Assembly: GCA_002269645.1 (NCBI GenBank)
Contig: NIVC01000016.1
Span: 62,001 to 126,000 of the forward strand
Direction of reading: 5' to 3'
Length of the DNA: 64,000 bases
Source of the DNA: Macrostomum lignano
Taxonomy: Eukaryota
The notes under the pieces were generated by a model, which saw only the letters and a list, made by a program, of their open reading frames with translations, did not search any database and had not been told where the DNA came from. Below, one piece after another: positions 1-63,337 of the stretch (position 1 is the first letter of the stretch; every line of letters starts with the position of its first letter). The position numbers were made by a program, and so were the translations under genes.

Positions 1-620
1 TAACCCACACAGCCAAACCCACACAGACCAACCCACACAGCCCAACCCACAAAGAATAACCCACACAGCCAAACCCACACAGACCAACCCACACAGCCAA
101 ACCCACACAGCCAAACCCACAAAGAATGACCCACACAGACCAACCCACAAAGAATAACCCACACAGCCAAACCCACAAAGAATAACCCACACAGCCAAAC
201 CCACACAGACCAACCCACACAGCCCAACCCACAAAGAATAACCCACAAAGAATAACCCACACAGCCAAACCCGCAAAGAATAACCCACACAGCCAAACCC
301 ACACAGCCAAACCCACACAGCCAAACCCACACAGCCAAACCCACACAGCCAAACCCACACAGCCAAACCCACAAAGAATAACCCACACAGCCAAACCCAC
401 ACAGACCAACCCACACAGCCCAACCCACAAAGAACAACCCACAAAGAATAACCCACACAGCCAAACCCACACAGACCAACCCACACAGCCCAACCCACAA
501 AGAACAACCCACAAAGAATAACCCACACAGCCAAACCCACACAGCCAAACCCACACAGCCAAACCCGCAAAGAATAACCCACACAGCCTAACCCACAAAG
601 AACAACCCACGCAGTCGAAC
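1..620. repeat. Degenerate minisatellite (AACCCACACAGCC / AACCCACAAAGAAT units) in GPCR intron 2
   Basis: Directly visible 13-14 bp units with an invariant AACCCAC core; the array stops at the minus-strand GT donor at 624-623. Confidence 0.9.
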
Positions 621-624
621 CCAC

Positions 625-1718
625 CTTTCTTTTGTTCTCCTCCCTGGCCTGAGTTCCGGACTGGGGCGCTCCGCCAACGGCGCCCTCTTCGCCAGGCGCC
701 GGCCGCATGAGCGCCCTGATGATGGCGCCAGAGGTGAAGATCACCACGGCCAGCGGGCAGAGGAACAGCAGAGCGAATGACGTCATCACATAGGCGGTGC
801 GGCCGGCCTGGCTGAAGCTGTCCAGGCAGTGCTGATTGCGCAGGCTGCCGTAACGGCTGGAGCCGTGAAATGGCACCGCGGCAGGGTGGAAGGCCTGCAC
901 CAGGCAGAATGCGGACGGCAGACTCCAAGTGAGCAGGATGAAGAGGCCGGTGCGACTGCGCGACTGGAACATCAGGCTGCGCAGCGGGTGCACGATAGCC
1001 AGGAAGCTGCGTGGGCGAAGAGGCGCGGAAAGTCACGTGATCAGCGATCAGCGATGCCAAGTTAGGTGCCTGTCTGAGTGATGCCTAATTAGGTGTCTGT
1101 CTGACTTAGTGATGCCTGATTAGGTGTCTGTCTCACTCAGTGGTGCCTAATTAGGTGTCTGTCTCAGTGATGCTTAATTAGGTGTCTGTCTCAGCGATGC
1201 CTGATTATAGTTGGGGGAGGGGGGGCAGATTTCCCTCACCGCTCCAGCGAGATGACCACCAGAGTGAGCAGGCTGGTGAACACCAGCAGCATCAGGAAGA
1301 AGGTGACCACAGCGCAGCCAAGCGAGTTGAAGATCTTGGCGGACAGCCAACAGGGTCCCAGCAGTTGGACTCCCTTCAGCGGCAGGACAATGACGGACAC
1401 GAGCAGATCCGTGATGGCCAGGTTCAGAATGTAGCAGTTGGTCACGGTCCGCATCGCCCTGTAGGCAGCTATGGACCCAATGACCAGCAGGTTGCCGACA
1501 AACATGGCCAGCCCCACGGCCACCCAGATGGCCGCCAGCGACAGTCGAAGCGATTCAATGTGCAGCAGGTCGGTGTACTCGGTGGCGTTGACGGTCAGGC
1601 AGTTGAACTCCTCCTGCATGCTGGGGGATTCCGTTTGTAGGCGAGATTGCAGAGAAGTTTGCTTGACAAGCTGCAGGACTGCAAGACAGGCTGCCTTCTG
1701 CGGCAATATTGCTTGCAT
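625..1718 (-). CDS. Class A (rhodopsin-like) GPCR, probably a peptide receptor; 3' part lies outside the window
   Basis: Exon 1 1718 (or downstream ATG 1619)..1240 encodes TM1 GNLLV, TM2 NLAITDLL and TM3 ending ISLE-R. Donor GTGAGG at 1239, acceptor CAG at 1009-1007. Exon 2 1006..625 continues R-FLAIVHPLR (ERF in place of DRY), TM4, ECL2 Cys (NQHCLDSF) and TM5 (FALLFLCPLAVVIF), then donor GTGGGT. TM6-7 are not in the window. Confidence 0.9.
1068..1205. repeat. Short degenerate array (TGATGCCTAATTAGGTGTCTGTCT-like) in GPCR intron 1
   Basis: About 5 copies with an ATTAGGTGTCTGTCT core. Confidence 0.75.
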
Positions 1719-1904
1719 ATTTAAGTTAGTTGAGTGACGATCGCTTATTGGCCAGCCCTGGCATGGAAATCTATACGAAGTCCTTGGTTGTAGCATTCCG
1801 AACTGGAAGCTTTAGAATGCTAGTTGCCAAATTTATTGTTGATCCACTCTGTGATACCTGTGCCATCCCGTGAACACAAGTTGGACCCCCAAATTTAACC
1901 TCTC

Positions 1905-2595
1905 TGGGTTCAATGTGACTCCCCTGATCCCAATGTGACTCCCCTGACCCAGTGTGACTCCCCTGACCCCGGAGTGACTCTCCTGACCCCAATGTGACTC
2001 CCCTGACCCCAATGTGACTCCCCTGACCTAGTGTGACTCCCCTGACCCCGGAGTGACTCTCCTGACCTCGATGTGACTCTCCTGACCCCAAAGTGACTCT
2101 CCTGACCCCAATGTGACTCCCCTGACCCCAATGTGACTCCCCTGACCCCAAGGTGACTCCCCTGACCCCAAAGTGACTCTCCTGACCCCAATGTGACTCC
2201 CCTGACCCGATGTGACTCTCCTGACCCCAAGGTGACTCTCCTGACACCAATGTGACTCTCCTGACCCCAATGTGACTCTCCTAACCCCAATGTGACTCTC
2301 CTGACCCCAATGTGACTCTCCTGACCCCAATGTGACTCCCCTAACCCCAATGTGACTCTCCTGACCTCGATGTGACTCTCCTGACACCAATGTGACTCTC
2401 CTGACCCCAATGTGACTCTCCTGACACCAATGTGACTCTCCTGACCCCAATGTGACTCTCCTGACCCCAATGTGACTCTCCTGACTTCAATGTGAATCTC
2501 CTGACCCCCAGTTTGACTCTCCTGACCCCAATGTGACTCTCCTGACCTCAATGTGACTCTCCTGACTTCAATGTGACTATCATGACCCCAATGGA
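1905..2595. repeat. 20-bp minisatellite (CCCCAATGTGACTCTCCTGA)
   Basis: About 34 copies; source of the GSGESHWGQESH-type ORFs. Confidence 0.95.
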
Positions 2596-3114
2596 GCATG
2601 AATCGAGTGTGAATTGAGTGTGAAAGAAGTGTGAAGAAGTGTGAATAGAGAGTGAGTGGAGCGTGAATTGAGCGTGAATCTAAGACTAGTACCAGGTCAA
2701 GCTGTCTTGAAGCAAAACCTTAAGAATTAGAAGCAAATCCTTCTGAGGCAAATCGGCATCTAATGTGTGAACCGGATTAAAATCTAGGACAGATCTGTGC
2801 CTCTCAGTTCCACAGCACAGCTTATGAATAAGCGCTGACCCCGATAGCTGAAAATTGAAATTATTTTTTGGCGTATTGGCGTGATTGCACAGAGAGAATA
2901 TTTCTTCCTATACATTTATATCAATGGAATTTAATTCCGCATTAAAGCACACCGATGGCTACAAAAAATTGCGTTGCCTAAAAATACCATACTGGCTACT
3001 ATTAGGTAGACAGTAAGTAGCAGTGTTGGAACATTTCCTATGGCGCAAACGTCTGCTTCAAAGAAGCTACCGTTTAAAATGAAAATTGACATCAGAGTGT
3101 CCTTGTTGCTGTAA

Positions 3115-3290
3115 CTGTTGAGAACTGTTGAAAACTGATTAGAATTGATGAGAACTGATGAGAAGTGATGAGAAGTGATAAGAACTGATGAGAACTGATG
3201 AGAACTGATGGGAACTGATGGGAACTGATGAGAACTGATGGGAACTGATGAGAACTAATGAGAACTGATGAAAACTGATGAGAACTGTCC
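3115..3290. repeat. 10-bp repeat (GAACTGATGA)
   Basis: Directly visible. Confidence 0.85.
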
Positions 3291-3832
3291 ATGATATTGA
3301 TAACTGATACGTGTATGGATTATTAATTCTCTATTCGTGCTATCAACATTGCCCTGACCAAAAACTGAGCTCACTGATGTCGCATTGCACAAGTGCTTTG
3401 TTCGTGTGCTGGCCTCAAAAATACTAACTCTTGTAGGCATTATTTACGAATAATTTCTCAGTTCCTGCAATTCTTGAAGTGAAACCGAAAATTTCTTCCG
3501 TTAACCAGACTATTTTTAGTCATGATGCCCATGCCATGCCTTGTTACCCAATATGTAGAGGACTGCTTTTGTGTCGTTGGGCCAGCCAATCCCCCTCGGC
3601 AGCTGGCCACAGTCACCAGTGTACTCTGAGCTAAAAATAGCACAGGACTTCAGGGTCGGAATTTCCAAGAAATGGCCTGGCTCTTATTCACGAAAAGCTT
3701 ATTAACCCCTCTTTAACTGGCTGGCTTTAAGCAACAAGAATCTAATCCAAATCTAATAAAGCTTTAATAGAATTCGAGTCAATTAACTCTTGGTCTTTCA
3801 CACTCGCTTCCCCAGATCAAAACCCGATCATC

Positions 3833-5512
3833 ATGGCCAGCTCAAAGTCACGCAGACCGCTGATGAAGCTGTCGATCGTTGGTCTTCTGATCTGCGTTCC
3901 ACTGATCTTCCTGATGGTCCGCCAGCAACAGCCACAAACGGCCGACCGGGCCGCCGCCGCAGGCGCTGGAAAGGACTGTCCAGAGAAGTGCAACTGCACC
4001 GTCGTGATGCGAAAGCACAGCGTCAAGAAGAATCAGGTGACCTGCCATGGCCTGTCCAGCATCCCGGACGGCATCCCGGTGAACACTCAGGTGCTCATTC
4101 TCAATGGGAACAGCATCTCAAAAATTAACGATGAGTTGAAGAATCTGTCCAAACTGGAGGAGCTGAGCATGGTTGACAACAAGCTGGAGAAAATCGGACC
4201 TGGCAACCTCACCGGCTTGAGCAGTCTCAGCCGGCTCTACCTGACCAGAAATCAACTCAGCAACTGGCCCGATCTGTGCGATGATGTCGGATCCAGCCTC
4301 ACTCACCTGGGCATCGATGAGAACCTCCTCACTGGGTCGGCAGCGCCGGATTCGTATGCCAAGTGCAGAAAGCTGGAGTCTCTGGTCCTCACCAAGAACA
4401 CCTTCCCCCAGCTCAGCAACGCCACCCTGGCAGCCCTCGGTGCTGCTGGTTCTCTCAAATCCGTGAAGCTCAACAGCGTCAAGATGACTGCCCTGGACCC
4501 CACGGCCCTGCTGCCCCTGGCTGATCACCTCACCAGCCTGGATCTCAGCCAGAACCCGGACCTGCCCGTCGAGCAGGTGGCGGCTGCCTTCAGCGCTGCC
4601 CGCTTCAGCAATCAGTTCCTCGGCCTGACCCTGAAATCCACTGGCTGGACTGAGCTGCCCGACGGCTTCCTGCCGAGCGGCAACTTCCCCAGTCTGGACA
4701 TCCTGCACCTGGACGGCAGCCAGAAGCTGTCGAGCATCCAGCCGAACGCCCTGGCTGGCGGCTCCAGCCTGACTCGCCTGTTCCTCAACCAGTGCCCGCT
4801 GACGTCGCTGGATGCTCAGCTGGCCAACCTGAGAAAGCTGACGGACATCAATCTGTCCGGGACCCGCCTGTCCAAGTGGACCCCGGACACGTTCGGCCAG
4901 CCGACCCTTCGCCGACTCTACTTGTCCAACGCTGGCGTGACGACCATCGGCGGGCTGGACGGCGTCAGCGAGAATCCGCTGCCCGGTCTGGCCAGCTTGG
5001 CTGACGGCGGCCTCCAGCTTGCTGGCAACCCGCTGGTGTGCAACTGCAGCCTGCTGTGGCTCAGCAAGCAGCTCGGGTCCGATGCCATTCGCAAGAAATT
5101 CTACAAGCTCGACCAGGTGACGTGTCGCGACCAGGCCAGCGGGAAGTCGATCAAACTGACCGACTGCAAGCCTGCCGACTGTAACTCTACTACGACTACT
5201 ACGGCTACCACTACTAGTACTGCTACTACTCAGAGTCCCACAGAGAATCCGGCCATTCCGGGCAAAGCCAAGCTTGCTGCCTGGGTTCTGCCCGTGGCCA
5301 TCTCTGCTGGAGTGCTGCTCCTGGCCGCACTGATGGCTGGCTCAGTCCTGCTAGCGCGTCGGTGCTCTATCCGACGCCAGCAGCAGCAGTTCGGCGACGG
5401 CGAGCAGCGACGCAGTCTGGTTCCAGGCGACGAAGACGATGACGATAGCAGCGTCAGCAACTGCTTCAAGTTGAGGAGTCGCCGTTCGCGTTCCGAGGAC
5501 CCGTTGGCCTGA
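3833..5512 (+). CDS. Single-exon leucine-rich-repeat type I membrane protein (559 aa)
   Basis: N-terminal hydrophobic segment (LSIVGLLICVPLIFLMV), LRR-NT CPEKCNC..VTC, about a dozen LxxLxLxxN repeats, LRR-CT NPLVCNCSLLWL..VTC, Thr-rich stalk, TM (WVLPVAISAGVLLLAALMAGSVLL) and a short tail. GC3-rich codons. Confidence 0.93.
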   Translation: MASSKSRRPLMKLSIVGLLICVPLIFLMVRQQQPQTADRAAAAGAGKDCPEKCNCTVVMRKHSVKKNQVTCHGLSSIPDGIPVNTQVLILNGNSISKINDELKNLSKLEELSMVDNKLEKIGPGNLTGLSSLSRLYLTRNQLSNWPDLCDDVGSSLTHLGIDENLLTGSAAPDSYAKCRKLESLVLTKNTFPQLSNATLAALGAAGSLKSVKLNSVKMTALDPTALLPLADHLTSLDLSQNPDLPVEQVAAAFSAARFSNQFLGLTLKSTGWTELPDGFLPSGNFPSLDILHLDGSQKLSSIQPNALAGGSSLTRLFLNQCPLTSLDAQLANLRKLTDINLSGTRLSKWTPDTFGQPTLRRLYLSNAGVTTIGGLDGVSENPLPGLASLADGGLQLAGNPLVCNCSLLWLSKQLGSDAIRKKFYKLDQVTCRDQASGKSIKLTDCKPADCNSTTTTTATTTSTATTQSPTENPAIPGKAKLAAWVLPVAISAGVLLLAALMAGSVLLARRCSIRRQQQQFGDGEQRRSLVPGDEDDDDSSVSNCFKLRSRRSRSEDPLA

Positions 5513-6231
5513 CTGGCTCGAGTCATTGGGAGAAGGACATCAATCAATCAATACGCTGCGCATGTACAACACTATTTATAATTTGGTTACTTATGCTGAC
5601 TGGAACCCATTTCTCTCGTAATGGCACTTAAAAAATCTTATTTGTTCGAGCCTACACTAGCTCAACACTTTGTTTGTAATCTAGGAGTATCTGTTTATTA
5701 AGGTGTTAAGTTACGGCTTCCTCTCGCTACATGCCCGATTCTACGCCCTCTATAGGCATTGCTAGAACAGCTTGATAAGAGACTGTCGGTTTGAACTGTT
5801 GATGTTATTACACGCTTAAACACTTTTGCCTCGTTATCTCTCGCGGTCATTCAATGAATAAACAATTTTTCTGCAGAATTCAAAGTGCAGCCTTCAGCTG
5901 ACGTGTAATTTCTTGGAAATTTAAGTTTTAAAATCTGTTAGATATGAGAGCCTGTTAGTTTCTCAGCAATACTTTCCAAGACACGTGTTAATTCTGGCTT
6001 GAACATTTTCGTACGATGATTGTAATAAACAAATTTATCTGATAGCAAATTCAACACTGCTTGTATTCTGAATTCAGTGACTAAACTTAATGCTGAATTA
6101 CAAAATCTCTTGTGCAACAAAGTTTACCTATCGCTGCATGTTACTTTTCTTTGAAATCAAACTGAGATTGAAAATTTTCGTTTTTAAGACAAAATTATCA
6201 ATTAGCCAATTAGTCTGAAGTTTTTAGATGC

Positions 6232-6335
6232 TTTGTTGATTGATTGTTTGATTAATTGATTGATTGATTGATTAATTGATTGATTGATTGATTGATTGGT
6301 ATGTTGATTAATTAATTGATTGATTGATTGGTATG

Positions 6336-7801: not shown

Positions 7802-9937
7802 TCAGTGGTCCTCTAGATCGGCGTCCTTGGTCTCTCGGGACAGGCAGAAGGCCGCCAGCAGTACCACGACGACGAAGGCGCCCGCGTAGACCACGAGGCC
7901 AGCAATCCGGGACGCCGGCATGACCACCTGGGCGATCAGGGGCGTCAGGATGCAGCCGCACTTGCCGGTGAGCTGGATCAGCCCGACGCCCAGCGCTCTC
8001 ACCCTTGTGGGGAACGCCTCCGGCGCGTAGATGTTGCTGATGTTGATGGTCACCACGGCGGAGCCGCGGGCGAAGAACAGCAGGCTGACCAGCAGGGGGG
8101 CGCTGCGGGGTGCCAGGCTGCTCAGCATGAGTAGCAGGGTGAAGCCACCAGCCAGGCCTGCGGTCACCTGCGCGGAAGGATTGTGGCAACTTTATCCACC
8201 ATGAGCCTGCTGACTGCCGCCATGCCCCAACATGATCCTACTATCCACTACTATGACCTGCTTCACTATGACCCCGCTATGACCTGCTCCACTATGATCT
8301 CGCTATGACCTACTCCACAATGAATGAAGTTGATGATCCCTAATATGACATTCACCGTGTCTCCAACTGGATCCTAACCATGAACCCTTCACTGCGGCAA
8401 TTCACACACGACACAGTGCCCACAATGACCCCTTAGCAACTGCCGGTCCCAAACCACCTGCAGCATTCGCCGCCTTTCCAGGTAGGCGCTGACGGACAGA
8501 GCGATAACTGTGCCGGGCACCTCCGACAAGGCCGTCACCAGCAGGTTGACGTAGTCGCGCTGCGACAGCGGCCGGCAGTCGGCGCCGCCGCAGCTGGACT
8601 GCAGCACCTCGGCGACGCTGTTGCTCATGCCGGACTCCTGGACGAGCTGCTGGGCGAACAGAACGCCGCCGTAGTAGGTGAAGTTTGTCAGGAAGCTGAT
8701 GGCAGCCAGGCCCAGCGTGAGGGAGCGAAGCCTCCTGCTGAACAGCCACTTGACGCGGGGCGCCTCCGCCGTCTTGGCCTCCTGGCTGATGCGCAATTTG
8801 TCCCAGTCAAAGTCAGACTCGCGACCGTTCACCTTGGTGCGGTTCGGTTTTATCTGGCTTGTAAAACTTTGCCAATCGATTTCTGGGCAGAATCTTCCCC
8901 AAAATTCGAATCCCAGGAGAATTCAATTCACGTACATTAATTTCAATCATCTACAGTTACAATAATAAATTAGCAGAAGGGTTTTGGTCACCGTGGAGAC
9001 ATCCGTCGCACAGCCAGCGCTGAGGCAATTCTGCCCATTCCGCTGCCTCCTGAGCACAGACAAGCGCGTCAATACTGTACTCAGGCACAGCACTCGTACA
9101 CACGCACACACGGGGTGTACAGCAGCGGCCCTTTGACTAATCTTCTCCAAAACAATTAATCCCCTAGCAACACACCCTGGCGATGTGCCTGAGCGAAGCC
9201 TTGCACTTGTCCATTTGGCCGTGCACCAGGTAGAACCGAGGCGTCTCCGGGACCAGCCAGTAAGCCCCGCAGCTGCCGATGATGGGCAGGGCAGACAGAA
9301 TGACGAGGATCCGCCAGGTTTCGTTGCCGACGCCGGCAGCGTTGAGTCCCAGAGCGACGGCGAGCTCCAGCACGGGGCCGACACTCCAGACGACAAAGCC
9401 GATGTTCAACAGATAGGCCCTGGCGGTTGCCGGGCAGCACTCGACCATGTACACCAGGCCCTGCGGCGTGGTTGCCATGAAGGCTCCGGCCACAGTGCGC
9501 AGGAAGACCAGCCATTCGAAGCTGGGCGACAGCGCGGAGATGAGCATGTAGTAGCCGGTGAAGGCCATGCCGAGGATCATGACGCCCCGCCTGCCATGCT
9601 GATCAGCCAGGAAGCCCCACAGCGGGCAGAACAGCAGGAAGCCCATGAAAATGGCCAGCGAGAAGATGGCCAGCCTCAGATTGGGCAGTTGCCACTGGCA
9701 CTGGATGGTGCGGCCCACAATTCCGATCAGAGTGATGCCCATGGACTCTCCTAGTAGAAGCAGGCCGGCAAACACCGTCAGGAGAGCTTGGAAGCGGCCA
9801 ACACCGAGGGCGTCGATCACTTCGCCAACTTTTATTGTTGGTCCGTCTTTGTCGTCGTCGCCTCCAGCCGAAGCAGCGCTTGAAACCGCCGGCCTGCTGC
9901 GACGGACGAGCTCGGTCTTCTCGGTGGCTTCGGACAT
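7802..9937 (-). CDS. svop: SVOP/SV2-related MFS transporter, 3 exons, about 500 aa
   Basis: Exons 9937..9176, 8832..8458 and 8167..7802, all phase 0 with GT/AG. Motifs IDALGVGRFQ, WGFLADQHGRR, PETPRFYL, NFTYYGGVLF and YAPEAFPTRVRALGVG are typical of SVOP-like proteins. SVOP versus SVOPL orthology is not resolved. Confidence 0.88.
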
Positions 9938-10004
9938 TGCCGGAGCCTCTCTTGTCCCTGTTGCCTCGTTCTTGTTTCCCTATTCAAGTCTTTGCGCTTG
10001 TGTC

Positions 10005-11260
10005 TTTGGTTAACTGTCGGAATGCGTCTTTGGTCAGCTATCGGAATGCGTCTTTGGTTAACTGTCGGAATGTGTCTTTGGTCAGCTATCGGAATGCGTC
10101 TTTGGTTAACTGTCGGAATGCGTCTTTGGTCAGCTATCGGAATGTGTCTTTGGTTGACTGTCGGAATGTGTCTTTGGTTAACTGTCGGAATGTGTCTTTG
10201 GTTAACTGTCGGAATTCGTCTTTAGTTAACTGTCGGAATGTGTCTTTGGTTAACTGTCGGAATGCGTCTTTGGTTAACTGTCGGAATTCGTCTTTAGTTA
10301 ACTGTCGGAATGTGTCTTTGGTTAACTGTCGGAATGCGTCTTTGGTTAACTGTCGGAATGTGTCTTTGGTTAACTGTCGGAATGCGTCTTTGGTTAACTG
10401 TCGGAATGTGTCTTTGGTTAACTGTCGGAATGTTTATTTGGTTAACTGTCGGAATGTGTCTTTGGTTAACTGTCGGAATGTTTATTTGGTTAACTGTCGG
10501 AATGTGTCTTTGGTTAACTGTCGGAATGTGTCTTTGGTTAACTGTCGGAATGTGTCTTTGGTTAACTGTCGGAATGCGTCTTTAGTTAACTGTCGGAATG
10601 TGTCTTTGGTTGACTGTCGGAATGCGTCTTTAGTTAACTGTCGGAATGTGTCTTTGGTTGACTGTCGGAATGTGTCTTTGGTTAACTGTCGGAATGTGTC
10701 TTTGGTTAACTGTCGGAATGCGTCTTTAGTTAACTGTCGGAATGTGTCTTTGTTAACTGTCGGAATGCGTCTTTAGTTAACTGTCGGAATGTGTCTTTGG
10801 TTGACTGTCGGAATGCGTCTTTGGTTAACTGTCGGAATGTGTCTTTGGTTAACTGTCGGAATGCGTCTTTAGTTAACTGTCGGAATGTGTCTTTGGTTGA
10901 CTGTCGGAATGCGTCTTTGGTTAACTGTCGGAATGTGTCTTTGGTTAACTGTCGGAATGTTTCTTTGGTTAACTGTCGGAATGTGTCTTTGGTTAACTGT
11001 CGGAATGCGTCTTTGGTTAACTGTCGGAATGTGTCTTTGGTTAACTGTCGGAATGCGTCTTTAGTTAACTGTCGGAATGTGTCTTTGGTTAACTGTCGGA
11101 ATGTGTCTTTGGTTAACTGTCGGAATGTGTCTTTGGTTAACTGTCGGAATGTGTCTTTGGTTAACTGTCGGAATGTGTCTTTAGTTAACTGTCGGAATGC
11201 GTCTTTGGTTAACTGTCGGAATGCGTCTTTGGTTAACTGTCGGAATGCGTCTTTGGTTAG
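10005..11260. repeat. 24-bp minisatellite (GGTTAACTGTCGGAATGTGTCTTT) immediately upstream of the MFS start codon
   Basis: About 52 highly homogeneous copies; yields the spurious (SLVNCRNV)n ORFs. Confidence 0.95.
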
Positions 11261-13377: not shown

Positions 13378-14136
13378 ATGCTGCTGCAAGCTGTGCTATC
13401 ACTACTGCTGCTGTGGGTCCCTGCGGTGCTGTCCGAGTCCTGCAGCTCCGCCAGGCTGAAATTCCACCGAACCACCGGACTGGACTGCGTGAGCTCCGAC
13501 TTCACCAGCATCGTGTCCGGTCTGTGCACTCCGCTCGAATGCAGCTACGTCTGCGCTAGGAAGGACAAGTGTCAGGCCTTCTCAGTGCTGACAGCTGGAG
13601 CCTGTCAGTGCAAGCTGTTCCTGTTCGATGCGTGCAGTCACCGTGTGCAGTCTGTGCCGAGCTGCACTCATCAGGTGACTGTGTATGTGAGGTCTCTGCC
13701 CGGCGTACCTCCGGGTCGCCTGTGTCCGTCCGGATACGAGCACACGAGACACGGCACCTCGTACAAGCTGGTCACGTCGGAGACACTCACCTGGAACAAC
13801 GCCAACCTGTCCTGCAGTGCGGATCCCGGACTGACCAAGTTCTCTGATGCGATCGACCTCGATGAGGCTCTGCACCTGAGGTCGCTGAAGCAGCTGATTG
13901 ACAGCTCCTCCGATTTTTTCCTTGGCGGATCTGGAACTTCGAATGCGCACTCTGACTGGTTCTGGGCCGCCTGCAACCTGCCCGTGAATGCCAGCGTATG
14001 GCACTCTGGAGAGCCGAACGGTGCCGCGTCATTGGAGTGCACCAATCTTTGGCATGGCCATTCAACTGGAGGCGTTGACGATGACTCCTGCAGCAGTGCT
14101 CGCAGGTACATCTGCGAGTGCCAGTCCGTGTTCTGA
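13378..14136 (+). CDS. Secreted PAN/apple-like + C-type lectin domain protein, single exon (252 aa)
   Basis: Signal peptide MLLQAVLSLLLLWVPAVLS; PAN-type Cys pattern (PLECSYVCARKDKCQAFSV...CQCKL); CTLD with LTWNNANLSC, FFLGG, WFW, WHSGEPNG..EC, DDSC and YICE. Confidence 0.88.
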   Translation: MLLQAVLSLLLLWVPAVLSESCSSARLKFHRTTGLDCVSSDFTSIVSGLCTPLECSYVCARKDKCQAFSVLTAGACQCKLFLFDACSHRVQSVPSCTHQVTVYVRSLPGVPPGRLCPSGYEHTRHGTSYKLVTSETLTWNNANLSCSADPGLTKFSDAIDLDEALHLRSLKQLIDSSSDFFLGGSGTSNAHSDWFWAACNLPVNASVWHSGEPNGAASLECTNLWHGHSTGGVDDDSCSSARRYICECQSVF

Positions 14137-14680
14137 AGCAGCGTCTTGAGTAGCAAAGAATTTACAAAAGAAGCGAGCGGTCTCGATGCAGTTCAGTGAA
14201 GCGTTTACGTGAAAATTTTTATGCCCAATTTAACTGCATCACGTCTAGGAAATTTTCGTCGAGTCTTTAAAACACTCAGCAATAACTATATCTAACTCAA
14301 ATAAAATATTGAGAATTTTCAGATAAATTTGATCTTTAAAAGGCCTGTCTGGTAAGCTGCAATAAACATGTGAATGTTTTTAATTCATTTATTTATTTGT
14401 CGAGAGTTGAACTGGGTTCTTACCGTAGCTGTGAAAGTTAATAATCTACACAATAATTGAAACAAACATTCTACTTTTAACAAAATCAAGATCAAATTGA
14501 ATTCAACGTCTGAGCCAGCTGAGCTGAGCTGGGCACGAGTCCACAGGATAGCAACGGCGTATTTATGATGGAAGAGAGACCGCGCATTTGCCATCGAACT
14601 TTTTTCTTTTCTAAAACTACTGTCAGTAGCCCAAATTGATTGCAGCAATCTTTTTATTTATTGAATCTTTGAAAAGTATC

Positions 14681-15430
14681 AAAAATTGTTGGGAATAAGA
14701 CTGCGGGAAATTCGAGCGTCCACGGCTGGCAAAAGAGTCGAGGTTAACTGCCGCCAGCCATTCAGCGCGGCACCGCGGCACCAGCAGCCGGGAGCTCTTT
14801 GAGTTGAGTCCGCGGCCTCTCCACCGCCTCGGGTCGCGGCTGCGTGAGCTGTCAAGCCGGCGGGCGGGCGCCCGTCTCCTCTGCCGGGCCTGGCAGAGCG
14901 GCACCGCCCCTCCTGCCTGGACGGCAGTCGGGGTTCGGCTGCGGACAGCCCCCCAGCCCACCCTTGCTTGGACTCAGCGCGCAGGAATGCGCCGCAGAGC
15001 TCGCGCCAAGGCGGGACTGGAAGCCGACACCGCAAAGCGACCCACCAAAGCCAGGCAGCCGGCCGGCAGGTCGCTCCAACCGTTCTAGGAAATTCCTGAG
15101 AGCGGAATCGCCTCGGTGCGATGCTCCGCCAGCTCGACTCCCGCGGTCCCGCCCTCACGCCCGCTAAGGTGTGCGGGTAGGTCGCGTACTCGAATTCCCC
15201 GGCCAGCAGATTGCCGGCCAGGATGGCCGAGTTCGCCATGCCCGCACGTTTTGGCCGAAGGCGGTTTCTGTCTCCGCTGGATGAGATCCGTGAAGTGCGG
15301 GGGTTCGAACCCGCGACCTTCAGAACCGAATCCAAGCGGAGGGTTGCGCGTCCACTCCGCGATGGGAGAAGTCGCTAACCACCCGGCTACGTGGGGACTT
15401 GAGCTGTAGGGCGCTGGAGGTTCTAGTCGA
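14681..15430 (-). ncRNA. Putative structured non-coding RNA / tRNA-headed element (family unknown)
   Basis: Minus strand: A-box-like TAGCCGGGTGG (15389-15379); tRNA-like anticodon/variable/T arm TTGGA-TTCGGT-TCTGA-AGGTC-GCGGGTTCGAACCCC (B box 15312-15301); many hairpins; long-range helices; no T4 run for about 690 nt until 14734-14731, then T5 at 14685-14681. G-U pairs indicate the minus strand. Confidence 0.45.
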
Positions 15431-16192: not shown

Positions 16193-18348
16193 TAAAGATA
16201 CGTACGTTACATGTAGAGGTTACGCACTTGCACAAGGCGTAAAGAAAGCTCTGAATTTCTCTTCGCCACGCAAGTACAAGCAAGAATATCATATTAACCC
16301 CCAAAATGTTAGGCCACGACAATAGAAAATTCTCCATAAGCAATACATGGAAAAAATTAATTGTGGGGTCCATTTGAATTTTTAGAGTTTGAGAGATGAG
16401 TGTGTGTTCGATCCACTTCTTATAAAATTAAACACAATTTCGTGAAAAAAAATATTTTCTCTGATGTGCATTTTTGCCTGGAACTAGCATCCAAAGATCT
16501 TCTTAGAAGCGAAGCTTCTCCTTCTACTCAATTTGTCCTTGATATCGTCCTTGCATCGAATCCAGGTGCATGTACTTTGGCTCGAGAGTAGGACATGTTA
16601 ATTAAAAATGTACTTTGTTGCAGGGTTTCGGCCTTTTGACCCCTCTAGATCCGCCATTGATCAGTAAGAACTCTTTCATATGACTAATATGAGTTAGATT
16701 TCAATTCACTTAAATTATGTTGGACCCCGTCCGCAAGGATAACGCTATTTGCTTTTTATTATCGTGGACGCGGTCGCCGTTCCTAGAAAGGCGTGCTTAA
16801 GCACGCATGAATGAGCACTTGCACAGAAACATGGTGGCTTACATAGCCTCATGTTAATTTTGTTTGACCTATAAGAGATGGTTAGATATTATGTAGTTGA
16901 GAGCCTAGTTTAGTCAATTTAGTTATAGTTACGCTGTGCAGAAAATAAATTTTACCCATGCCAGGGCTTTATGAAGTGAATTAGTGAATAATATTTTTTG
17001 AGATCTAATGAATATTTTACATGAATTCAGAACACAAAATATCAAATTTTAATAGCTAATGTGTATTAGTTACTGAAAATCGCAATCACTGCTACCTTTA
17101 ATTAAATAAGCAATTTTTATAATGTTTATTGAACAAAATGTTTATTGAGGACCTAATTGCTAATGCTATGCTAATTGCTAACTATAATTTTAATTTTGAT
17201 AGCCACAACATATATCATTTAGATAGGCTTATGCTTTGTTACTAATCTATAAAAAATCTTTTACAGTAAGCAAAACATAGAAAATGAAAGATATAACTTA
17301 GCTTTTTATTTATTAATTCTTAGGCTTAAGGGGTTGCAAATGTTTTAATATTTTAATTTTATTTTTTTTAAATAAATTGTATTTCACATTTTGTTCAGTT
17401 TGATATTTATTCCATAATAGTTTAATATGATTATGTCATTGTTTGATTACTTTGCAAATTCTTTGACTTTGTTGTAATAAAATGTCCTATAAATATTAAT
17501 ATATCAATAAAAATAAGAATTTATTAATTATTAGGCCTAATTATATACAAATTTCTAAAAAAAACCATACTCAATAAAGTGGCCTGCATGCCAGAATTTT
17601 GATGAACAAGATTTTGCATGAAATATTTAATGCTTGCTGATATTTTGCATAAGAATATTTATATATGCATATAAATATATTCATTATATAATTTATCTAT
17701 TTATAAATTATTTTGGTTTTTCATATATATCATGGCATATACCATCATAACAAAGTTATCCATAGAAGTCCAAAATTTAGACCTTAGACTTAAAGCTAGA
17801 TGTATTTTAATTTGATCCTATATTGGGATTTATGTTTCATTTGAAATATCTTTATTTTCATAATTTTTAGGGTTCTTAGGACTTTTTCAACTTTTGTTAA
17901 ATATGAAAAATGGTTAGGTATTTTATCTTTTGGTATACAATATGCATGTGCCCATGTAGTTTTTAGACTATATCATATATGCTTGTACCATTAATATACT
18001 ATCTCTAGGTAGGATAGATTCCCTAATCCCAAAATCCAAAGATCCCAGCAAAAATAAAGATCTTGATCCTGCTCAATCTCAAAGTCTATACTACTCATAG
18101 TATAAGCCTTTACTACTCATAGTATGGTCAAACACTCAATTGTGAATTGTGCAACATATCTTTCTATACATATAGGCAGAAAAAAGTTCATTGCATATAG
18201 ACTGCAGCATTTTTATATTCATTATTTTTTATACATATCACATTAGCCAAGCTATTAAAATGTAATTAATATTTCACTGCTTCAGTCTGCAGAAGAAGGA
18301 GAAGCAGAAGCAAGAGGAGCAACTGCAGCTGTCGTCACCTGCACGGCT

Positions 18349-21300
18349 ATGGCGGCCTGCGACTATCGCGCCTGGCACGAGCGCCTCCGAGCAGTGGCGC
18401 CAGAGACTCGCGCAGTCCCACTGAGCGAGTCCTTCATCAGCTACCTGCTGGCCGATGGCATGCAACTGCCGCCCCATCATCAGGCCGGTGTCAATGGCGT
18501 TGCCAATGGCAACGATAGCGACGATAGCAACAGTCAATCCAGCTTTGCATTGAGCGATGACGATGCAGACCTCAGGCAGGTTGGCAACGATCCCGACAGC
18601 TTGTTTCCCGAGCTCAAAGCTGAGGTACACGAGGGTGTTTGAGCAGGTCTTCTTACTACTCAAGCTTGCTTGCTTGCTTCTAGCAGTGTGTAGATTATCT
18701 TTCTCTGACAGATCTTTACGATTCTATATTGCAATCTTTTTTCATCGCTATTAAACTTAATCACAGGCACTTTGAATGCCACATATCCAATAATCCTTGA
18801 TCCCAGACAGTGAGATCCCATATCCAATAATCCTTGATCCCAGACAGTGAGATCCCATATTCAATAATCCTCAACCCCAGACAGTGAGATCCCATATCCA
18901 ATAATCCTTGATCCCAGACAGTGAGATCCCATATCCAATAATCCTTAATCCCAGACAGTGAGATCCCATATCCAATAATCCTTGATCCCAGACAGTGAGA
19001 TCCCATATCCAATAATCCTTGATCCCAGACAGTGAGATCCCATATCCAATAATCCTTAATCCCAGACAGTGAGATCCCATATCCAATAATCCTTGATCCC
19101 AGACAGTGAGATCCCATATCCAATAATCCTTAATCTCAGACAGTGAGATCCCATATCCAATAATCCTTGATCCCAGACAGTGAGATCCCATATCCAATAA
19201 TCCTTGATCCCAGACAGTGAGATCCCATATCCAATAATCCTTAATCCCAGACAGTGAGATCCCATATCCAATAATCCTTGATCCCAGACAGTGAGATCCC
19301 ATATCCAATAATCCTTAATCCCAGACAGTGAGATCCCATATCCAATAATCCTTAATCCCAGACAGTGAGATCCCATATCCAATAATCCTTGATCCCAGAC
19401 AGTGAGATCCCATATTCAATAATCCTCAACCCCAGACAGTGAGATCCCATATCCAATAATCCTTGATCCCAGACAGTGAGATCCCATATCCAATAATCCT
19501 TAATCCCAGACAGTGAGATCCCATATCCAATAATCCTTGATCCCAGACAGTGAGATCCCATATCCAATAATCCTTAATCCCAGACAGTGAGATCCCATAT
19601 CCAATAATCCTTGATCCCAGACAGTGAGATCCCATATCCAATAATCCTTGATCCCAGACAGTGAGATCCCATATCCAATAATCCTTAATCCCAGACAGTG
19701 AGATCCCAAATCCAATAATCCTTGATCCCAGACAGTGAGATCCCATATCCAATAATCCTTAATCCCAGACAGTGAGATCCCATATCCAATAATCCTTAAT
19801 CCCAGACAGTGAGATCCCATATCCAATAATCCTTGATCCCAGACAGTGAGATCCCATATTCAATAATCCTCAACCCCAGACAGTGAGATCCCATATCCAA
19901 TAATCCTTGATCCCAGACAGTGAGATCCCATATCCAATAATCCTTAATCCCAGACAGTGAGATCCCATATCCAATAATCCTTAATCCCAGACAGTGAGAT
20001 CCCATATCCAATAATCCTTAATCCCAGACAGTGAGATCCCATATCCAATAATCCTTAATCCCAGACAGTGAGATCCCATATCCAATAATCCTTGATCCCA
20101 GACAGTGAGATCCCATATCCAATAATCCTTAATCCCAGACAGTGAGATCCCATATCCAATAATCCTTAATCCCAGACAGTGAGATCCCATATCCAATAAT
20201 CCTTGATCCCAGACAGTGAGATCCCATATCCAATAATCCTTAATCCCAGACAGTGAGATCCCATATCCAATAATCCTTGATCCCAGACAGTGAGATCCCA
20301 TATCCAATAATCCTTGATCCCAGACAGTGAGATCCCATATCCAATAATCCTTAATCCCAGACAGTGAGATCCCATATCCAATAATCCTTGATCCCAGACA
20401 GTGAGATCCCATATCCAATAATCCTTGATCCCAGACAGTGAGATCCCATATCCAATAATCCTTAATCCCAGACAGTGAGATCCCATATCCAATAATCCTT
20501 GATCCCAGACAGTGAGATCCCATATCCAATAATCCTTAATCCCAGACAGTGAGATCCCATATCCAATAATCCTTAATCCCAGACAGTGAGATCCCATATC
20601 CAATAATCCTTAATCCCAGACAGTGAGATCCCATATCCAATAATCCTTAATCCCAGACAGTGAGATCCCATATTCAATAATCCTCAACCCCAGACAGTGA
20701 GATCCCATATCCAATAATCCTTGATCCCAGACAGTGAGATCCCATATCCAATAATCCTTAATCCCAGACAGTGAGATCCCATATCCAATAATCCTTAATC
20801 CCAGACAGTGAGATCCCATATCCAATAATCCTTAATCCCAGACAGTGAGATCCCATATCCAATAATCCTTAATCCCAGACAGTGAGATCCCATATCCAAT
20901 AATCCTTAATCCCAGACAGTGAGATCCCATATTCAATAATCCTCAACCCCAGACAGTGAGATCCCATATCCAATAATCCTTGATCCCAGACAGTGAGATC
21001 CCATATCCAATAATCCTTGATCCCAGACAGTGAGATCCCATATCCAATAATCCTTAATCGCAGACAGTGAGATCCCATATCCAATAATCCTTAATCCCAG
21101 ACAGTGAGATCCCATATCCAATAATCCTTGATCCCAGACAGTGAGATCCCATATCCAATAATCCTTGATCCCAGACAGTGAGATCCCATATCCAATAATC
21201 CTTGATCCCAGACAGTGAGATCCCATATCCAATAATCCTTAATCCCAGACAGTGAGATCCCATATCCAATAATCCTTAATCCCAGACAGTGAGATCCCAT

Positions 21301-23134
21301 ATCCAATAATCCTTAATCCCAGACAGTGAGATCCCATATCCAATAATCCTTAATCCCAGACAGTGAGATCCCATATTCAATAATCCTCAACCCCAGACAG
21401 TGAGATCCCATATCCAATAATCCTTGATCCCAGACAGTGAGATCCCATATCCAATAATCCTTAATCCCAGACAGTGAGATCAATGATCAATGATGATACG
21501 AGCTAATATCCCCAAAATCGGCAACCCGAATCCCTAAAATCCCGATTCCTGCAGGTGGAATCCGCCATCGCCACCCTGGGCGGCAGCGCCTTCCCCAAGC
21601 TGACCTGGACGGCGCCGAAAGACGCTCGCTGGGTGAGCTTCGATAACAGCCTGCGCTGCGGCTCCTTCTTGGACGTCTGCATGCTTTTGAAATCTTCGGA
21701 CGACTGCGCGCACGACCTGCTCCGGGCGCTGCCGGCCTGCCGCTGCGACTGCGGCGACGGCATCGATGAGACTGAGCACTGCTGCTCCAGGCAGCCCTAC
21801 GGCCACTGCCTGCTGCTCAGGCGGTGGGTTGACGTGCCCGAGTCCGGCGAGTTTCGCTGCTTCTGGCGCCGGGGTCGCCTTGCGGCCGTCTGTCAGCGAA
21901 GGCTGGCCGCCTGCTATCCTCATCTGGCCGATGCGGCTGGCGTTGACCGCCTGCTTGACCGGTAGGGGCTGCTGAGGACGGGAGGTCATGCGAGGACAGC
22001 TTGGTTGCTATAGTAAATGCCAGTCAGTTGGACAGAACCTGATCTCAAGTTTCTGCGTCCTCACTCAGCCCCAGTAGAGTTACCTGAGTTAACTAAAGTT
22101 AACTAAAGTTACCTGAGTTTAGGAAGGTCATTAGGCCTCATAAATTAAACAGTCAAAAATTAAGTTATTTAAAGCCAGGAATCAATTAATTTGGGGTCAC
22201 CTAAAGACAGGAATAAATCTATTTGGGGTCACCTAAGGACAGTAATGAATCTATTTGGGGTCACATAAGGACAGTAATGAATCTATTTGGGGTCACATAA
22301 GGACAGTAATTAATCTATTTGGGGTCACATAAGGACAGTAATGAATCTATTTGGGGTCAGCTAAGGACAGTAATGAATCTATTTGGGGTCACCTAAGGAC
22401 AGTAATTAATCTATTTGGGGTCAGCTAAGGACAGTAATGAATCTATTTGGGGTCACCTAAGGACAGTAATGAATCTATATGGGGTCACCAAGGACAGGAA
22501 TGAATCTATTTGGGGTCACATAAGGACAGTAATGAATCTATTTGGGGTCACCTAAGGACAAAAATGAATTTATTTTGTGTCACCTAAGGACAAGAATGAA
22601 TCTATTTGGGGTCATCTGAGGACAGGAATGAATTAATTTAGGGCCACCCGAGGACAAGGATCAGTCATAATTGCAGCAGGCCACCCCAGGGCAATAAATA
22701 AATTAAATGTTGTGTGAGTTCGAATTCCAATCTTCCCGCAGCATTTTTGCCTTCCTGTCTGACCTCGCGCCCGCCTGCCTGCCGCCGGCCCTCGCGCAGT
22801 CCGGCTGCGTATTTGACCTCTATTTGACCTCTGACTCGCGCGACTCCTGCCGCCTATTGGACTTGGCGCCTTGGGCCCGCCAACTGATTCGCTGTTGTTT
22901 GACTGGCCGGAGCTGACGGCGGCTGAGGCGCGGCAGCGGCGGCCGCTGTTCCGCCGGCTGACGGACGACTCGCAGGCCGAGCTGCGGCCTGTCGCCGCCA
23001 TGCCGCTGGACTTTCACTGCCTGCTGGGCCGCGGCGGCGGGGCGGCAGACGGCGACCTCGCCGAGATGCTCCGGCTGGCTGAGGCCCGACAGCGGGCTGG
23101 AGAGGAAAGCTCATCCGCCTCCTCTGATGGATGA
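18349..23134 (+). CDS. CDC123: Cell division cycle protein 123 (D123 ATP-grasp family, eIF2 assembly factor), 3 exons, apparent 1-nt frameshift in exon 3
   Basis: Exons 18349..18624, 21555..21961 and 22742..23134. Motifs CDYRAWHER..YLLADG, FPEL, LGGSAFPKLTWTAPKDARW, LLKSSD..HDL, LRRWVDV..SGEFRCF, AVCQR, DLY and TDSLLFDWPEL. One G is missing at 22873-22875; restoring it gives 1077 nt = 358 aa + stop. Confidence 0.93.
18778..21480. repeat. 37-bp minisatellite (GAGATCCCATATCCAATAATCCTTGATCCCAGACAGT) filling CDC123 intron 1
   Basis: About 73 head-to-tail copies with no spacers. Confidence 0.97.
22190..22630. repeat. 32-bp minisatellite (TAAGGACAGTAATGAATCTATTTGGGGTCACC) in CDC123 intron 2
   Basis: About 13 copies. 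Confidence 0.9.
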
Positions 23135-26278: not shown

Positions 26279-34252
<7,974 letters not shown>

Positions 34253-44800: not shown

Positions 44801-45823
44801 CGACATCGTCTGGCCGGAGATCCGGCGCTTGGCTTTAGAGGTCCGTCATGCAGAATCCGCCGCTGCCACCTGGAGAATCTCCCTCAGCCACCTGTAGAAT
44901 CTCCCTCAGCCACCTGTAGAATCTCCCTCAGCCACCTATAGAATCTCCCTCAGCCACCTATAGAATCTCCCTCAGCCACCTGTAGAATCTCCCTCAGCCA
45001 CCTCTAGAATCTCCCTCAGCCACCTATAGAATCTCCCTCAGCCACCTGTAGAATCTCCCTCAGCCACCTATAGAATCTCCCTCAGCCACCTCTAGAATCT
45101 CCCTCAGCCACCTAGAGAATCTCCCTCAGCCACCTGTAGAATCTCCCTCAGCCACCTGTAGAATCGCTCTCAAATCTCATACTCATAGGAGAATCGCCCT
45201 CAAATCTCGTAGGAGAATCGCCCTCAATTCCCATAGGATAATTGCCCTCAAATCTCATAGGAGAATCGCCCTCAAATCTCATAGGAGAATCGCCCTCAAA
45301 TATCATAGAAGAATCGCCCTCAAATCTCATAGGAGAATCGCCCTCAAATCTCATAGGAGAATCGCCCTCAAATCTCATAGGAGAATCGCCCTCAAATCTC
45401 ATGGGAGAATCGCCCTCAAATCTAAAGATAATCGCCCTCAGCCACCTAAAGAACCGGAACAAAATCGCCTACCCCCAGGCTGTGCACTCCGGCCCCCAGT
45501 CGGCCAGTCCAGACGTCGTGGTCCTTGACGCTGCCGTGCTCCTAGAAGCTGAGTGGCAGTGCCTCTGCCACGAAGTGTGGCTCTGCCTCATCCCGAAGCG
45601 GGAGGCGGTCAAGCGGCTGACGGAGCGGGACGGCCTGACGGAGGAGGCGGCGCAGGCTCGACTGGCCGCTCAGCTGACCGATGCGGACCGGCTCAGCTGG
45701 GCTAGCGTCGCTTTGTGCACCCTGTGGGAGCCGGAGGCCACCCAGGCTCAAGTTGAGCTGGCCTGGAAACGGTTGCTAAGGGAACGATTGGGCGCTACTC
45801 CGGGTCCGCAGTCGAATTTGTAG
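41877..45823 (+). CDS. COASY: Bifunctional coenzyme A synthase (PPAT + dephospho-CoA kinase), 4 exons, about 515 aa
   Basis: Exons 41877..42206, 42716..43205, 44458..44840 and 45479..45823. Motifs VALGGTFDRLHSGHK (HxGH), KLSSS, DPCK P-loop GLTGGSGSGKS, VDCDRLGH, LNDIVWPEI and VLDAAVLLEAEW. Confidence 0.95.
42285..42530. repeat. Degenerate 10-bp repeat (ATCTTCCCGT / ATCGCTTGT) in COASY intron 1
   Basis: Directly visible. Confidence 0.85.
43214..44455. repeat. 14-bp minisatellite (ACCTGTTCACCCCA) forming essentially all of COASY intron 2
   Basis: About 88 copies running from donor to acceptor. Confidence 0.97.
44873..45445. repeat. Two related arrays in COASY intron 3: 22-bp TAGAATCTCCCTCAGCCACCTG then 24-bp GAGAATCGCCCTCAAATCTCATAG
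   Basis: Directly visible. Confidence 0.9.
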
Positions 45824-45857
45824 ATCAGTTTTGTTTTTTGTGTTCATTGATTCCGCT

Positions 45858-46945
45858 GTAGAATCGCCCTCAGCTACCTATTGGAGAATCGCCCTCAGCT
45901 ACCTATTGGAGAATCGCCCTCAGCTACCTATTGGAGAATCGCCCTCAGATACCTATTGGAGAATCGCCCTCAGCTACCTATTGGAGAATCGCCCTCAGCT
46001 ACCTATTGGAGAATCGCCCTCAGCTACCTATTGGAGAATCGCCCTCAGCTACCTATTGGAGAATCGCCCTCAGATACCTATTGGAGAATCGCCCTCAGCC
46101 ACCTATTGGAGAATCGCCCTCAGCTACCTATTGGAGAATCGCCCTCAGATACCTATTGGAGAATCGGCCTCAGCCCCTATTGGAGAATCGGCCTCAGCCA
46201 CCTATTGGAGAATCGCCCTCAGCTACCTATTGGAGAATCGCCCTCAGATACCTATTGGAGAATCGCCCTCAGCTACCTATTGGAGAATCGCCCTCAGCTA
46301 CCTATTGGAGAATCGCCCTCAGATACCTATTGGAGAATCGGCCTCAGCCCCTATTGGAGAATCGGCCTCAGCCACCTATTGGAGAATCGCCCTCAGCTAC
46401 CTATTGGAGAATCGCCCTCAGCTACCTATTGGAGAATCGCCCTCAGCCCCTATTGGAGAATCGCCCTCAGCCCCTATTGGAGAATCGGCCTCAGCTACCT
46501 ATTGGAGAATCGCCCTCAGATACCTATTGGAGAATCGCCCTCAGCTACCTATTGGAGAATCGCCCTCAGCTACCTATTGGAGAATCGCCCTCAGCTACCT
46601 ATTGGAGAATCGCCCTCAGCTACCTATTGGAGAATCGCCCTCAGCTACCTATTGGAGAATCGCCCTCAGCTACCTATTGGAGAATCGCCCTCAGCTACCT
46701 ATTGGAGAATCGCCCTCAGCTACCTATTGGAGAATCGCCCTCAGCTACCTATTGGAGAATCGCCCTCAGCCACCTATTGGAGAATCGCCCTCAGCTACCT
46801 ATTGGAGAATCGCCCTCAGCCCCTATTGGAGAATCGGCCTCAGCCCCTATTGGAGAATCGCCCTCAGCTACCTATTGGAGAATCGCCCTCAGCTACCTAT
46901 TGGAGAATCGCCCTCAGCCCCTATTGGAGAATCGGCCTCAACCCC
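45858..46945. repeat. 25-bp minisatellite (GAGAATCGCCCTCAGCTACCTATTG) 3' of the COASY stop
   Basis: About 44 copies with 21-bp deletion variants; source of the YWRIALS/LLENRPQ ORFs. Confidence 0.95.
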
Positions 46946-47489
46946 CTATTCAAAATTGAAGTGACATTGCTATTCAATAATTATTTACCTGATTTTTGGC
47001 TGCAATGGTGTACTGTTGAAAATGTCCAACTCTTTTTTATATACCTTACTGTCATAATGATGATGAACTTCGTACAGAAATACAACAGGTCATTTGTTTC
47101 GTCTGCAGTTGCTTGATTTCTACTGATTAATTTGTTCACAAAGCAATAAAAGCAATCTGCTCTGTGTTGAATATTGAATTTATTTTCTCTAATTATGTGT
47201 TTACCTTGATTTCGAAGGGAAAAGTAAAAATTCCGGTATACTACTTAGTTACCCGTGGTTTAGTAGCCTGCCAAGAATGCAAGTGTTGCTTTGTCCTCAA
47301 TGATCGTGGGATCTCTTTAACAGAGTCAACTTTTGGCGGGCGAAACAAACTCACGAGGGCTCAAAAGCCAAAATTCGCGCAAATACAAAATACAAACTCA
47401 TATTGAAGCGAGCAAAAGCGACACAACACAACAAGGGTACTAAAATCGAGTTCATCAACAACAGTTACTTCAGCTGTTAGTCAGTCGCT

Positions 47490-49980: not shown

Positions 49981-63337
<13,357 letters not shown>

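Follow-up and report, generated by a model that had tools for sequence, protein, structure and literature searches.

A GC-rich island of 750 nucleotides (nt) in the genome of the flatworm Macrostomum lignano (positions 14681-15430, minus strand) most probably represents a well-folded RNA unit without coding function, which incorporates a degenerate piece of tRNA and was entered in GenBank, in error, as a protein of 51 residues. It differs sharply in composition from its flanks, folds better than shuffled sequence, has no coding signal, carries a tRNA-derived head, is present in three copies of its locus and is matched by a transcript model on the same strand. Tentatively, the unit is interpreted here as SINE-like, tRNA-derived and non-coding, fixed at a single locus and most plausibly read from an internal promoter. 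All positions refer to the window, the whole stretch of 64,000 nt that was analysed.

Genomic context and boundaries of the island

Positions 8286-32916 of the window are 100% identical to NIVC01000016.1:70286-94916 of M. lignano (assembly GCA_002269645.1, Mlig_3_7), and an MFS-transporter exon at 9164-9937 (minus strand) shows 100% identity to M. lignano BOX15_Mlig017804g4. The window thus corresponds to positions 62001-126000 of this contig, which is 922 kb long and belongs to a free-living flatworm. Neighbouring exons in the window are animal-like (LRR, C-type lectin, MFS, CDC123/D123, CDKL-type kinase and collagen), and the neighbouring CDC123 protein could be rebuilt from three exons. Minisatellites are numerous in the window and CpG is not depleted.

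The first-pass annotation had described a GC-rich island with sharp edges in AT-rich DNA, and this was borne out: GC content is 64-75% across approximately 14800 to 15400 and 29-46% in the flanks. The whole unit is 750-800 nt long, with a GC-rich leader that begins approximately 30 nt upstream of the tRNA-like part. A TATA-like sequence, TATAAAAA, lies on the minus strand at 15460-15453, exactly where it had been placed, some 30 nt before the GC-rich body begins; it may be a TATA box, is unchanged in all three locus copies and overlaps one member of a direct repeat, ATAAAAAG (15459-15452).

At the opposite end, a run of five T residues (14685-14681, minus strand) falls exactly at the end of the GC-rich body, within AATTTTTGA (14687-14679), and may represent a Pol III terminator. 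This 9-mer also matches the Sm-site consensus RAU4-6GR; locus copy L005 has AGTTTTTGA there, and an Sm-site reading of AAUUUUUGA was rejected as it is not preserved in that copy. Two overlapping AATAAA motifs on the minus strand (14662-14657 and 14658-14653; together 14653-14662), a possible Pol II polyadenylation signal, follow 19-28 nt past the T5 run and 38-47 nt past the GC boundary, the second of them overlapping the other member of the direct repeat ATAAAAAG (14657-14650). A T4 run is located within the body at 14734-14731. Both T runs originally reported are confirmed, but the use of some 690 nt free of T4 as evidence for Pol III does not stand: the stretch in question (686 nt) carries no information, because 68% of composition-matched shuffles are also free of TTTT (P=0.68).

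Coding status and GenBank annotation

The island contains an ORF of 186 amino acids (14679-15239, minus strand, from an ATG at 15239), which corresponds to the GenBank CDS BOX15_Mlig002200g1. Its enclosing frame of 218 codons has a flat GC1/GC2/GC3 profile (0.63/0.68/0.69), unlike the genuine genes of the window (GC3 of 0.72-0.86, GC2 of 0.30-0.52). The ORF encodes 186 residues in the window copy and 51 in another copy of the locus, through a 1-nt insertion; this 51-mer is exactly PAA85591.1, ‘hypothetical protein BOX15_Mlig002200g1’, on contig NIVC01000315.1. The annotated CDS therefore represents the same locus and strand, with its start at the ATG of window position 15239, while the window’s own copy has no GenBank gene. 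The longest ORF had no homologue among 5.8 billion proteins, none of nine ORFs of the element matched Pfam or NCBIfam, and exact look-ups of ten of its ORFs returned nothing beyond the GenBank 51-mer. The gene identifier Mlig002200 was not found in the supplements or full texts of published papers that were searched. As the ORF is not kept between locus copies, the evidence points to a non-coding transcript, in agreement with the initial proposal, and the 51-residue protein is judged to be a spurious ORF inside a non-coding island.

The same-strand gene BOX15_Mlig002200g1 is also indirect evidence for the minus-strand transcript that had been predicted, since it derives from an RNA-seq-based annotation. 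That annotation was built from strand-specific RNA-seq assemblies, leaves out non-coding transcripts and those overlapping repeat annotation, and trims transcripts at experimental poly(A) sites, one of which is available for 80% of genes (PMC5730564). The source RNA libraries were both polyA+ and RiboMinus (PMC5173321), so the annotation is silent on the polymerase. Its repeat filter excludes a repeat weakly, because unclassified repeat models were discarded from the repeat library used.

Predicted RNA fold

The minimum free energy (MFE) of the minus strand is -386.7 kcal/mol, approximately 42 kcal/mol below dinucleotide shuffles (z = -6.9 with 20 shuffles and -6.0 with 48). For the homogeneous core of the island (14700-15420, minus strand), z = -6.05 was obtained under whole-sequence as well as 60-nt block dinucleotide shuffles. 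The unusually good minus-strand fold expected from the initial inspection was thus confirmed, with z of about -6 as opposed to about -3 for the plus strand (-2.6 to -3.4). Given this plus-strand value, part of the fold signal must be strand-neutral palindromy; the other part favours the minus strand, by approximately 26 kcal/mol where 7-9 would be expected. Twelve GC-rich control segments of 750 nt, taken from the window, gave z between +6.7 and -4.07, making the element the most extreme by a margin that is not wide. On the minus strand local z falls below zero over most of the element, with values close to zero at 14700-14899; in the flanks it is approximately zero.

In the predicted ensemble, the RNA possesses a 3′ domain of approximately 450 nt (14698-15149, minus strand) closed by a helix between 15149-15132 and 14717-14698 (P 0.87-0.96), with strong hairpins at 15077-15034 and 14761-14722 within it. 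An 18-bp hairpin (15188-15232, minus strand; P ~0.95) includes GGCCGGCA-ATC-TGCTGGCC, one of the local hairpins listed by the first-pass annotation, all of which are present. Its two long-range helices fared differently: they are complementary on paper, and their ensemble pairing probability is approximately 0.01. A further imperfect hairpin of 70 nt (15272-15341, minus strand; helices P 0.6-0.99) has the palindromic B box/T arm described below at its apex. It constitutes a self-inverted repeat (75% over 70 nt) with a local z of -3.4 to -4.6, and the former T arm caps it because the downstream sequence pairs back onto the variable-loop/anticodon-like region.

The tRNA-derived head

Identity of a 22-mer to tRNAs, together with inspection of the sequence, delimits a degenerate tRNA-derived module at 15297-15396 (minus strand). 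It consists of an A-box/D-arm-like TAGCCGGGTGGTTAGCGAC (15389-15371), an insertion of approximately 35 nt after the D arm with a small CUCC/GGAG hairpin (15368-15355), an anticodon-loop-like ATTCGGT of Arg type (15331-15325, with TCG at 15329-15327), a variable loop AGGTC (15319-15315) and a T arm GCGGG-TTCGAACC-CCCGC (15314-15297) whose loop contains an additional C. The 22-mer, GAAGGTCGCGGGTTCGAACCCC (15321-15300), has exact matches in at least 120 prokaryotic contigs; of the 122 prokaryotic occurrences, 115 fall within a tRNA called by ARAGORN, in which the 22-mer runs from the end of the anticodon stem through the variable loop and the T arm. This identity with genuine tRNAs shows that this part of the element is truly tRNA-derived. 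The tRNA derivation proposed at the outset therefore holds, but the head is not accepted as a tRNA: ARAGORN called no tRNA gene in the window and the Rfam tRNA model gave no match at E<=10 on 15270-15420 (151 nt). The acceptor stem is absent, the T loop measures 8 nt, and the anticodon stem is broken (one Watson-Crick and two G-U pairs out of five).

The A-box-like TAGCCGGGTGG was verified at 15389-15379 (minus strand). The B box GGTTCGAACCC is present as reported, with a start one base away from the 15312 originally given; its correct span is 15311-15301. As GGTTCGAACCC is palindromic, it is readable on the plus strand too, at 15302-15312. The B-box pattern occurs at this single palindromic site in 64 kb, giving two matches when both strands are counted (0.41 expected), a number that 8 of 100 shuffles attain; the A-box pattern occurs once in 64 kb (1.94 expected). 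The two boxes are on the same strand, 78 nt apart, with the A box upstream. Taken singly, each box occurs about as often as chance would predict for the window; what stands out is solely their combined order and spacing.

Comparison with known RNA families

A search of the whole window against Rfam 15 gave no matches at gathering thresholds, and Rfam searches at E<=10 yielded only noise, in keeping with the failure of the initial inspection to match the island to a known RNA family. Covariance models of RNase P/MRP, SRP, 7SK, vault, Y, telomerase, snRNA and ribozymes were among those with no Rfam match. Telomerase RNA was in addition rejected as the element has no CCCTAA- or CCTAA-type template stretch of at least 7 nt, and a solo-LTR reading was rejected as it has no terminal repeats or LTR features. 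A similarity search of phage DNA with the element returned nothing, and scans of metagenomes and viruses with A-box...B-box and T-arm-plus-downstream patterns gave zero matches.

Possible retroposon features and locus copies

Like a SINE, the element has a tRNA-related head at its 5′ end with A and B boxes in order. Direct repeats are found on its flanks, these being the ATAAAAAG pair and CTTTTCA (15470-15464 and 14676-14670). A target-site duplication may account for the ATAAAAAG pair; since 15% of shuffled flanks have an 8-mer in common as well (P=0.15), the direct repeats do not rise above chance level. The element ends in ...CAACAATTTTTGATACTTTTCAAAGATTCAATAAATAAAAAG, with no poly(A), A-rich or microsatellite tail, and does not resemble the 3′ end of the full-length LINE nearby, whose tail is (TAAGTCAAG)2. 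At 750-800 nt it exceeds the limit of approximately 600 nt for SINEs and is about twice their usual size.

Two more contigs with copies of the locus were reached through the CDC123 protein cluster. The element is present with identical flanks in all three locus copies, namely the window (L004), L001/L003 (99.2% identity) and L005 (99.0%). A further sequence, L002, had been considered an older, approximately 87%-identical homeologue; this was rejected, as it is a 97.6% copy that ends before the element. The DV1 line is known for duplicated blocks of at least 95% identity, and the three locus copies are such blocks and not transposed copies. Screening of approximately 100 kb of non-redundant M. 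lignano DNA with blastn and nhmmer revealed no dispersed copy or fragment. A full-length LINE (APE, RT, RNase H) is inserted approximately 80 nt downstream of the element in a single one of the locus copies, and retrotransposition has therefore been active at this locus.

Ten substitution sites distinguish the three copies: six are at unpaired positions, one changes an A-U to a G-U pair and three break predicted pairs. Unpaired bases make up 30% of the element in the predicted fold, and this leaning of substitutions towards unpaired positions is suggestive only. The three syntenic copies, 99% identical, contain no compensatory change, and their alleles are equally stable when folded (MFEs of -386.7, -384.4 and -387.2 kcal/mol). 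Between copies the element diverges by 0.93% in each of the two comparisons. In one of them the flanks diverge by 2.7%, above the value for the element, whereas in the other the nearest 2 kb of upstream flank diverge by 0.2-0.6%, below it, with a rise to 3.1% at a greater distance, where there is a minisatellite. The two comparisons give opposite answers, and the element is thus not consistently more constrained than its flanks.

Candidate promoter signals and proposed origin of the unit

The signals around the island could serve either polymerase. For a Pol III promoter of type 2 or mixed type, the 78 nt that separate the A and B boxes fall within the expected 30-90 nt, and a T5 run stands at the end of the body. 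The TATA-like sequence precedes the A box by 64-71 nt, and the start that it predicts would place the A box at approximately +42, beyond the 10-20 nt from the start expected of such a promoter; in Pol III genes that combine a TATA box with A and B boxes, the usual spacing between TATA and A box is about 40 nt. A Pol II unit would likewise be bracketed by a TATA box and AATAAA, and the island has a TATA-like sequence at about -30, AATAAA beyond its end and a transcript model. Transcription by Pol III is accordingly put forward with some reserve; a Pol II transcript that starts under the direction of the TATA box and is polyadenylated downstream of AATAAA is at least as plausible while still short of an even chance, and the remaining probability falls to neither or both polymerases.

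The SINE-like reading, which the first-pass annotation had named as an alternative, would make the island a taxon-restricted non-coding RNA unit of M. lignano with a tRNA-derived retroposon architecture. Its decayed, tRNA(Arg-TCG-like) head would retain the A- and B-box consensus sequences and be followed by an unrelated, strongly self-pairing GC-rich body of approximately 600 nt, the whole having become fixed at one locus with the minus strand transcribed. The internal A and B boxes, possibly with the upstream TATA, would recruit TFIIIC/TFIIIB and Pol III; transcription would start between approximately 15430 and 15400 and end at the T4 (14734) or T5 (14685-14681) run. The resulting RNA is predicted to fold into a 5′ domain, in which the T arm caps the 70-nt hairpin, and the 450-nt 3′ domain closed by the helix 15149-15132/14717-14698. 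Any function of such an RNA would be putative.

Almost as likely is an intronless, polyadenylated long non-coding RNA of Pol II (or the transcript of a very young gene), in which the tRNA-like piece would be an embedded fossil with no promoter role. The TATA-like sequence at 15460 would then direct a start near 15430 and the AATAAA pair at 14662-14653 cleavage near 14640. The spacing of TATAAAAA from the GC boundary (approximately 30 nt) and the two AATAAA motifs beyond the island suit this reading, as do an annotated gene from a pipeline that cuts at experimental poly(A) sites and a TATA-to-A-box spacing that is poor for Pol III; no Pol III RNA of this length is known. The inclusion of RiboMinus RNA among the libraries, however, means that annotation is no proof of polyadenylation. 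Both the TATA-like sequence and the second AATAAA share the 8-mer ATAAAAAG and so may have arisen by duplication of a single AT-rich target, in which case they would not be independent signals, and a perfect B box with an ordered A box at the 5′ end would have to be a coincidence.

A single-copy gene devoted to a new class of Pol III transcript, a functional RNP RNA under structural selection, is unlikely. It would account for a fold excess greater than in any other sequence tested and biased towards the minus strand, and is consistent with the finding of syntenic copies only (in the approximately 100 kb of non-redundant DNA), with the passage of the transcript through the published annotation’s filter against repeat-annotated transcripts, and with the leaning of substitutions towards unpaired positions. 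Against it stand the lack of consistent constraint relative to the flanks, the weakness of a repeat filter whose library had dropped unclassified repeats, the one GC-rich control at z = -4.07 and the failure of the two long-range helices that had been offered as evidence. The more specific proposal of an undescribed class of structured Pol III RNAs in flatworms, of approximately 700-750 nt, at a single locus, with a domesticated tRNA fragment as promoter and a role as cellular RNP scaffold or small-RNA precursor, is given rather little credence.

That the island is an inert GC-rich relic, such as a fragment of an old insertion, with a fold due to palindromes and a gene model due to read-through or mapping noise, is improbable. 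The copies show no sign of constraint, the fold excess is in part found on the plus strand (z ~ -3), as palindromes at the DNA level would give, and the window’s own copy has no GenBank gene, all of which such a relic would explain; the coincidence of its boundaries with the TATA and T5/AATAAA motifs, the energy bias of approximately 26 kcal/mol towards the minus strand (7-9 expected) and the same-strand transcript annotated at one copy speak against it. A protein-coding gene as deposited in GenBank (PAA85591.1) is largely refuted and hardly credible: the island is annotated as a CDS and its 218-codon ORF spans the whole body, which is mildly unexpected at 68% GC (an estimated ~1% per frame), but the ORF varies between 51 and 186 residues among copies, its codon-position GC is flat, and the protein searches found neither homologue nor domain.

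Relation to other tRNA-headed RNAs and significance

The tRNA-derived SINEs of animals (CORE-, V-, Deu-, Ceph- and MetaSINE; PMC4824008) resemble the M. lignano element in having a tRNA head with A and B boxes and an unrelated body, and in being non-coding, sharply bounded, insertion-like units, here in AT-rich DNA. They are usually under 500 nt long, whereas the M. lignano element measures 750-800 nt; it also differs from them in having no significant target-site duplication, no LINE-type, A-rich or microsatellite tail, no second, non-syntenic copy in the approximately 100 kb searched, and a GC-rich leader of approximately 30 nt before the head. Rodent BC1 and primate BC200 are Pol III RNAs of 150-200 nt with an A-rich centre and known expression and partners. 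They share with the M. lignano element a single fixed locus, a head of tRNA/SINE type, internal A and B boxes plus upstream elements, and a non-coding structured RNA (PMC6114260), which in M. lignano would be four times longer. In the tRNA-miRNA-encoded RNAs (TMERs) of murid gammaherpesvirus 68 (PMC6315926), A and B boxes within a tRNA-like head direct Pol III transcription of the hairpins that follow, an arrangement similar to that proposed here, where the involvement of Pol III is putative. The TMERs are, however, viral, 200-250 nt long and equipped with a foldable head that is processed by RNase Z, while the M. lignano head has no cloverleaf fold.

M. lignano is a species for which public RNA-seq, 5′-end and poly(A)-site data exist and in which RNAi and transgenesis are established. 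A dedicated Pol III RNA, if the island encodes one, would far exceed in length all others of its kind in animals and would clearly exemplify the reuse of a tRNA fragment as promoter. Were the island SINE-like, it would represent the first tRNA-headed family described in Macrostomum, with an unusually long structured body. Either way, the GenBank protein annotation of this locus is corrected.

Structure of the element end and a retrotransposon insertion

At the end of the GC-rich element, the putative non-coding RNA unit with a tRNA-derived head, the sequence AAUUUUUGA (window 14687-14679, minus strand) matches the Sm-site consensus RAU4-6GR. It is replaced by AGUUUUUGA in L005, one of the syntenic locus copies, which also acquires a new T5 at 14699-14695.

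A full-length non-LTR retrotransposon of 5.8 kb was identified in L005 (positions 472-6296), at a site corresponding to the interval between window 14541 and 14575. It encodes a 1236-aa ORF with APE endonuclease, RT and RNase H, with a 317-aa ORF1 located upstream, and its 3' end consists of (TAAGTCAAG)2. The retrotransposon was found in only one of the three locus copies (L005) and is an insertion polymorphism, lying approximately 80 nt downstream of the element.

Protein clusters and homology searches

The 90% cluster of PAA85592.1, the CDC123/D123 protein of the neighbouring gene, includes unrelated LRRCT proteins, presumably owing to a fused 3339-aa UniRef model (A0A1I8HC33) that spans neighbouring genes; it was this mixed membership that made other locus copies reachable. 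A homology search using the 218-aa ORF, the longest frame of the element, did not retrieve the 51-aa hypothetical protein PAA85591.1 even though the latter is present in the searched collection and the two have a 38-residue stretch in common (97% identity). Negative results of this search for short proteins are to be treated with caution.

Minisatellite arrays

A 37-nt minisatellite array (window 18634-21400) comprises at least 73 copies that are 96-99% identical. It is located within the CDC123/D123 gene (window about 18286-22916, plus strand), presumably in an intron. A 24-nt minisatellite occurs directly upstream of an MFS gene (window 9999-11259; L002 1-1231), and as contig NIVC01000015.1 (L002) stops within it, this array is an assembly breakpoint. 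Further long arrays, of minisatellite or purine-rich type and showing extreme strand skews, are present at window 33000-34200, 45800-47100, 53100-54000, 55000-56000 and 59300-59900. Some of these adjoin real exons, namely the first exon of a CDKL kinase (about 34000-34168) and collagen-like exons at 53900-54350 and 59850-60500.

A C-type lectin ORF

An intact ORF of 252 aa was also identified (window 13378-14136, plus strand). It encodes a signal peptide together with a C-type lectin domain, the latter matched in Pfam at E=1.5e-5. GenBank annotation of this ORF is absent on both contigs, and its closest database relative, from Branchiostoma belcheri, shows just 31% identity. Between two locus copies the ORF has no differences over 759 nt, while its flanks differ by 1.3-1.5%. 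Annotation has probably overlooked a real gene here.
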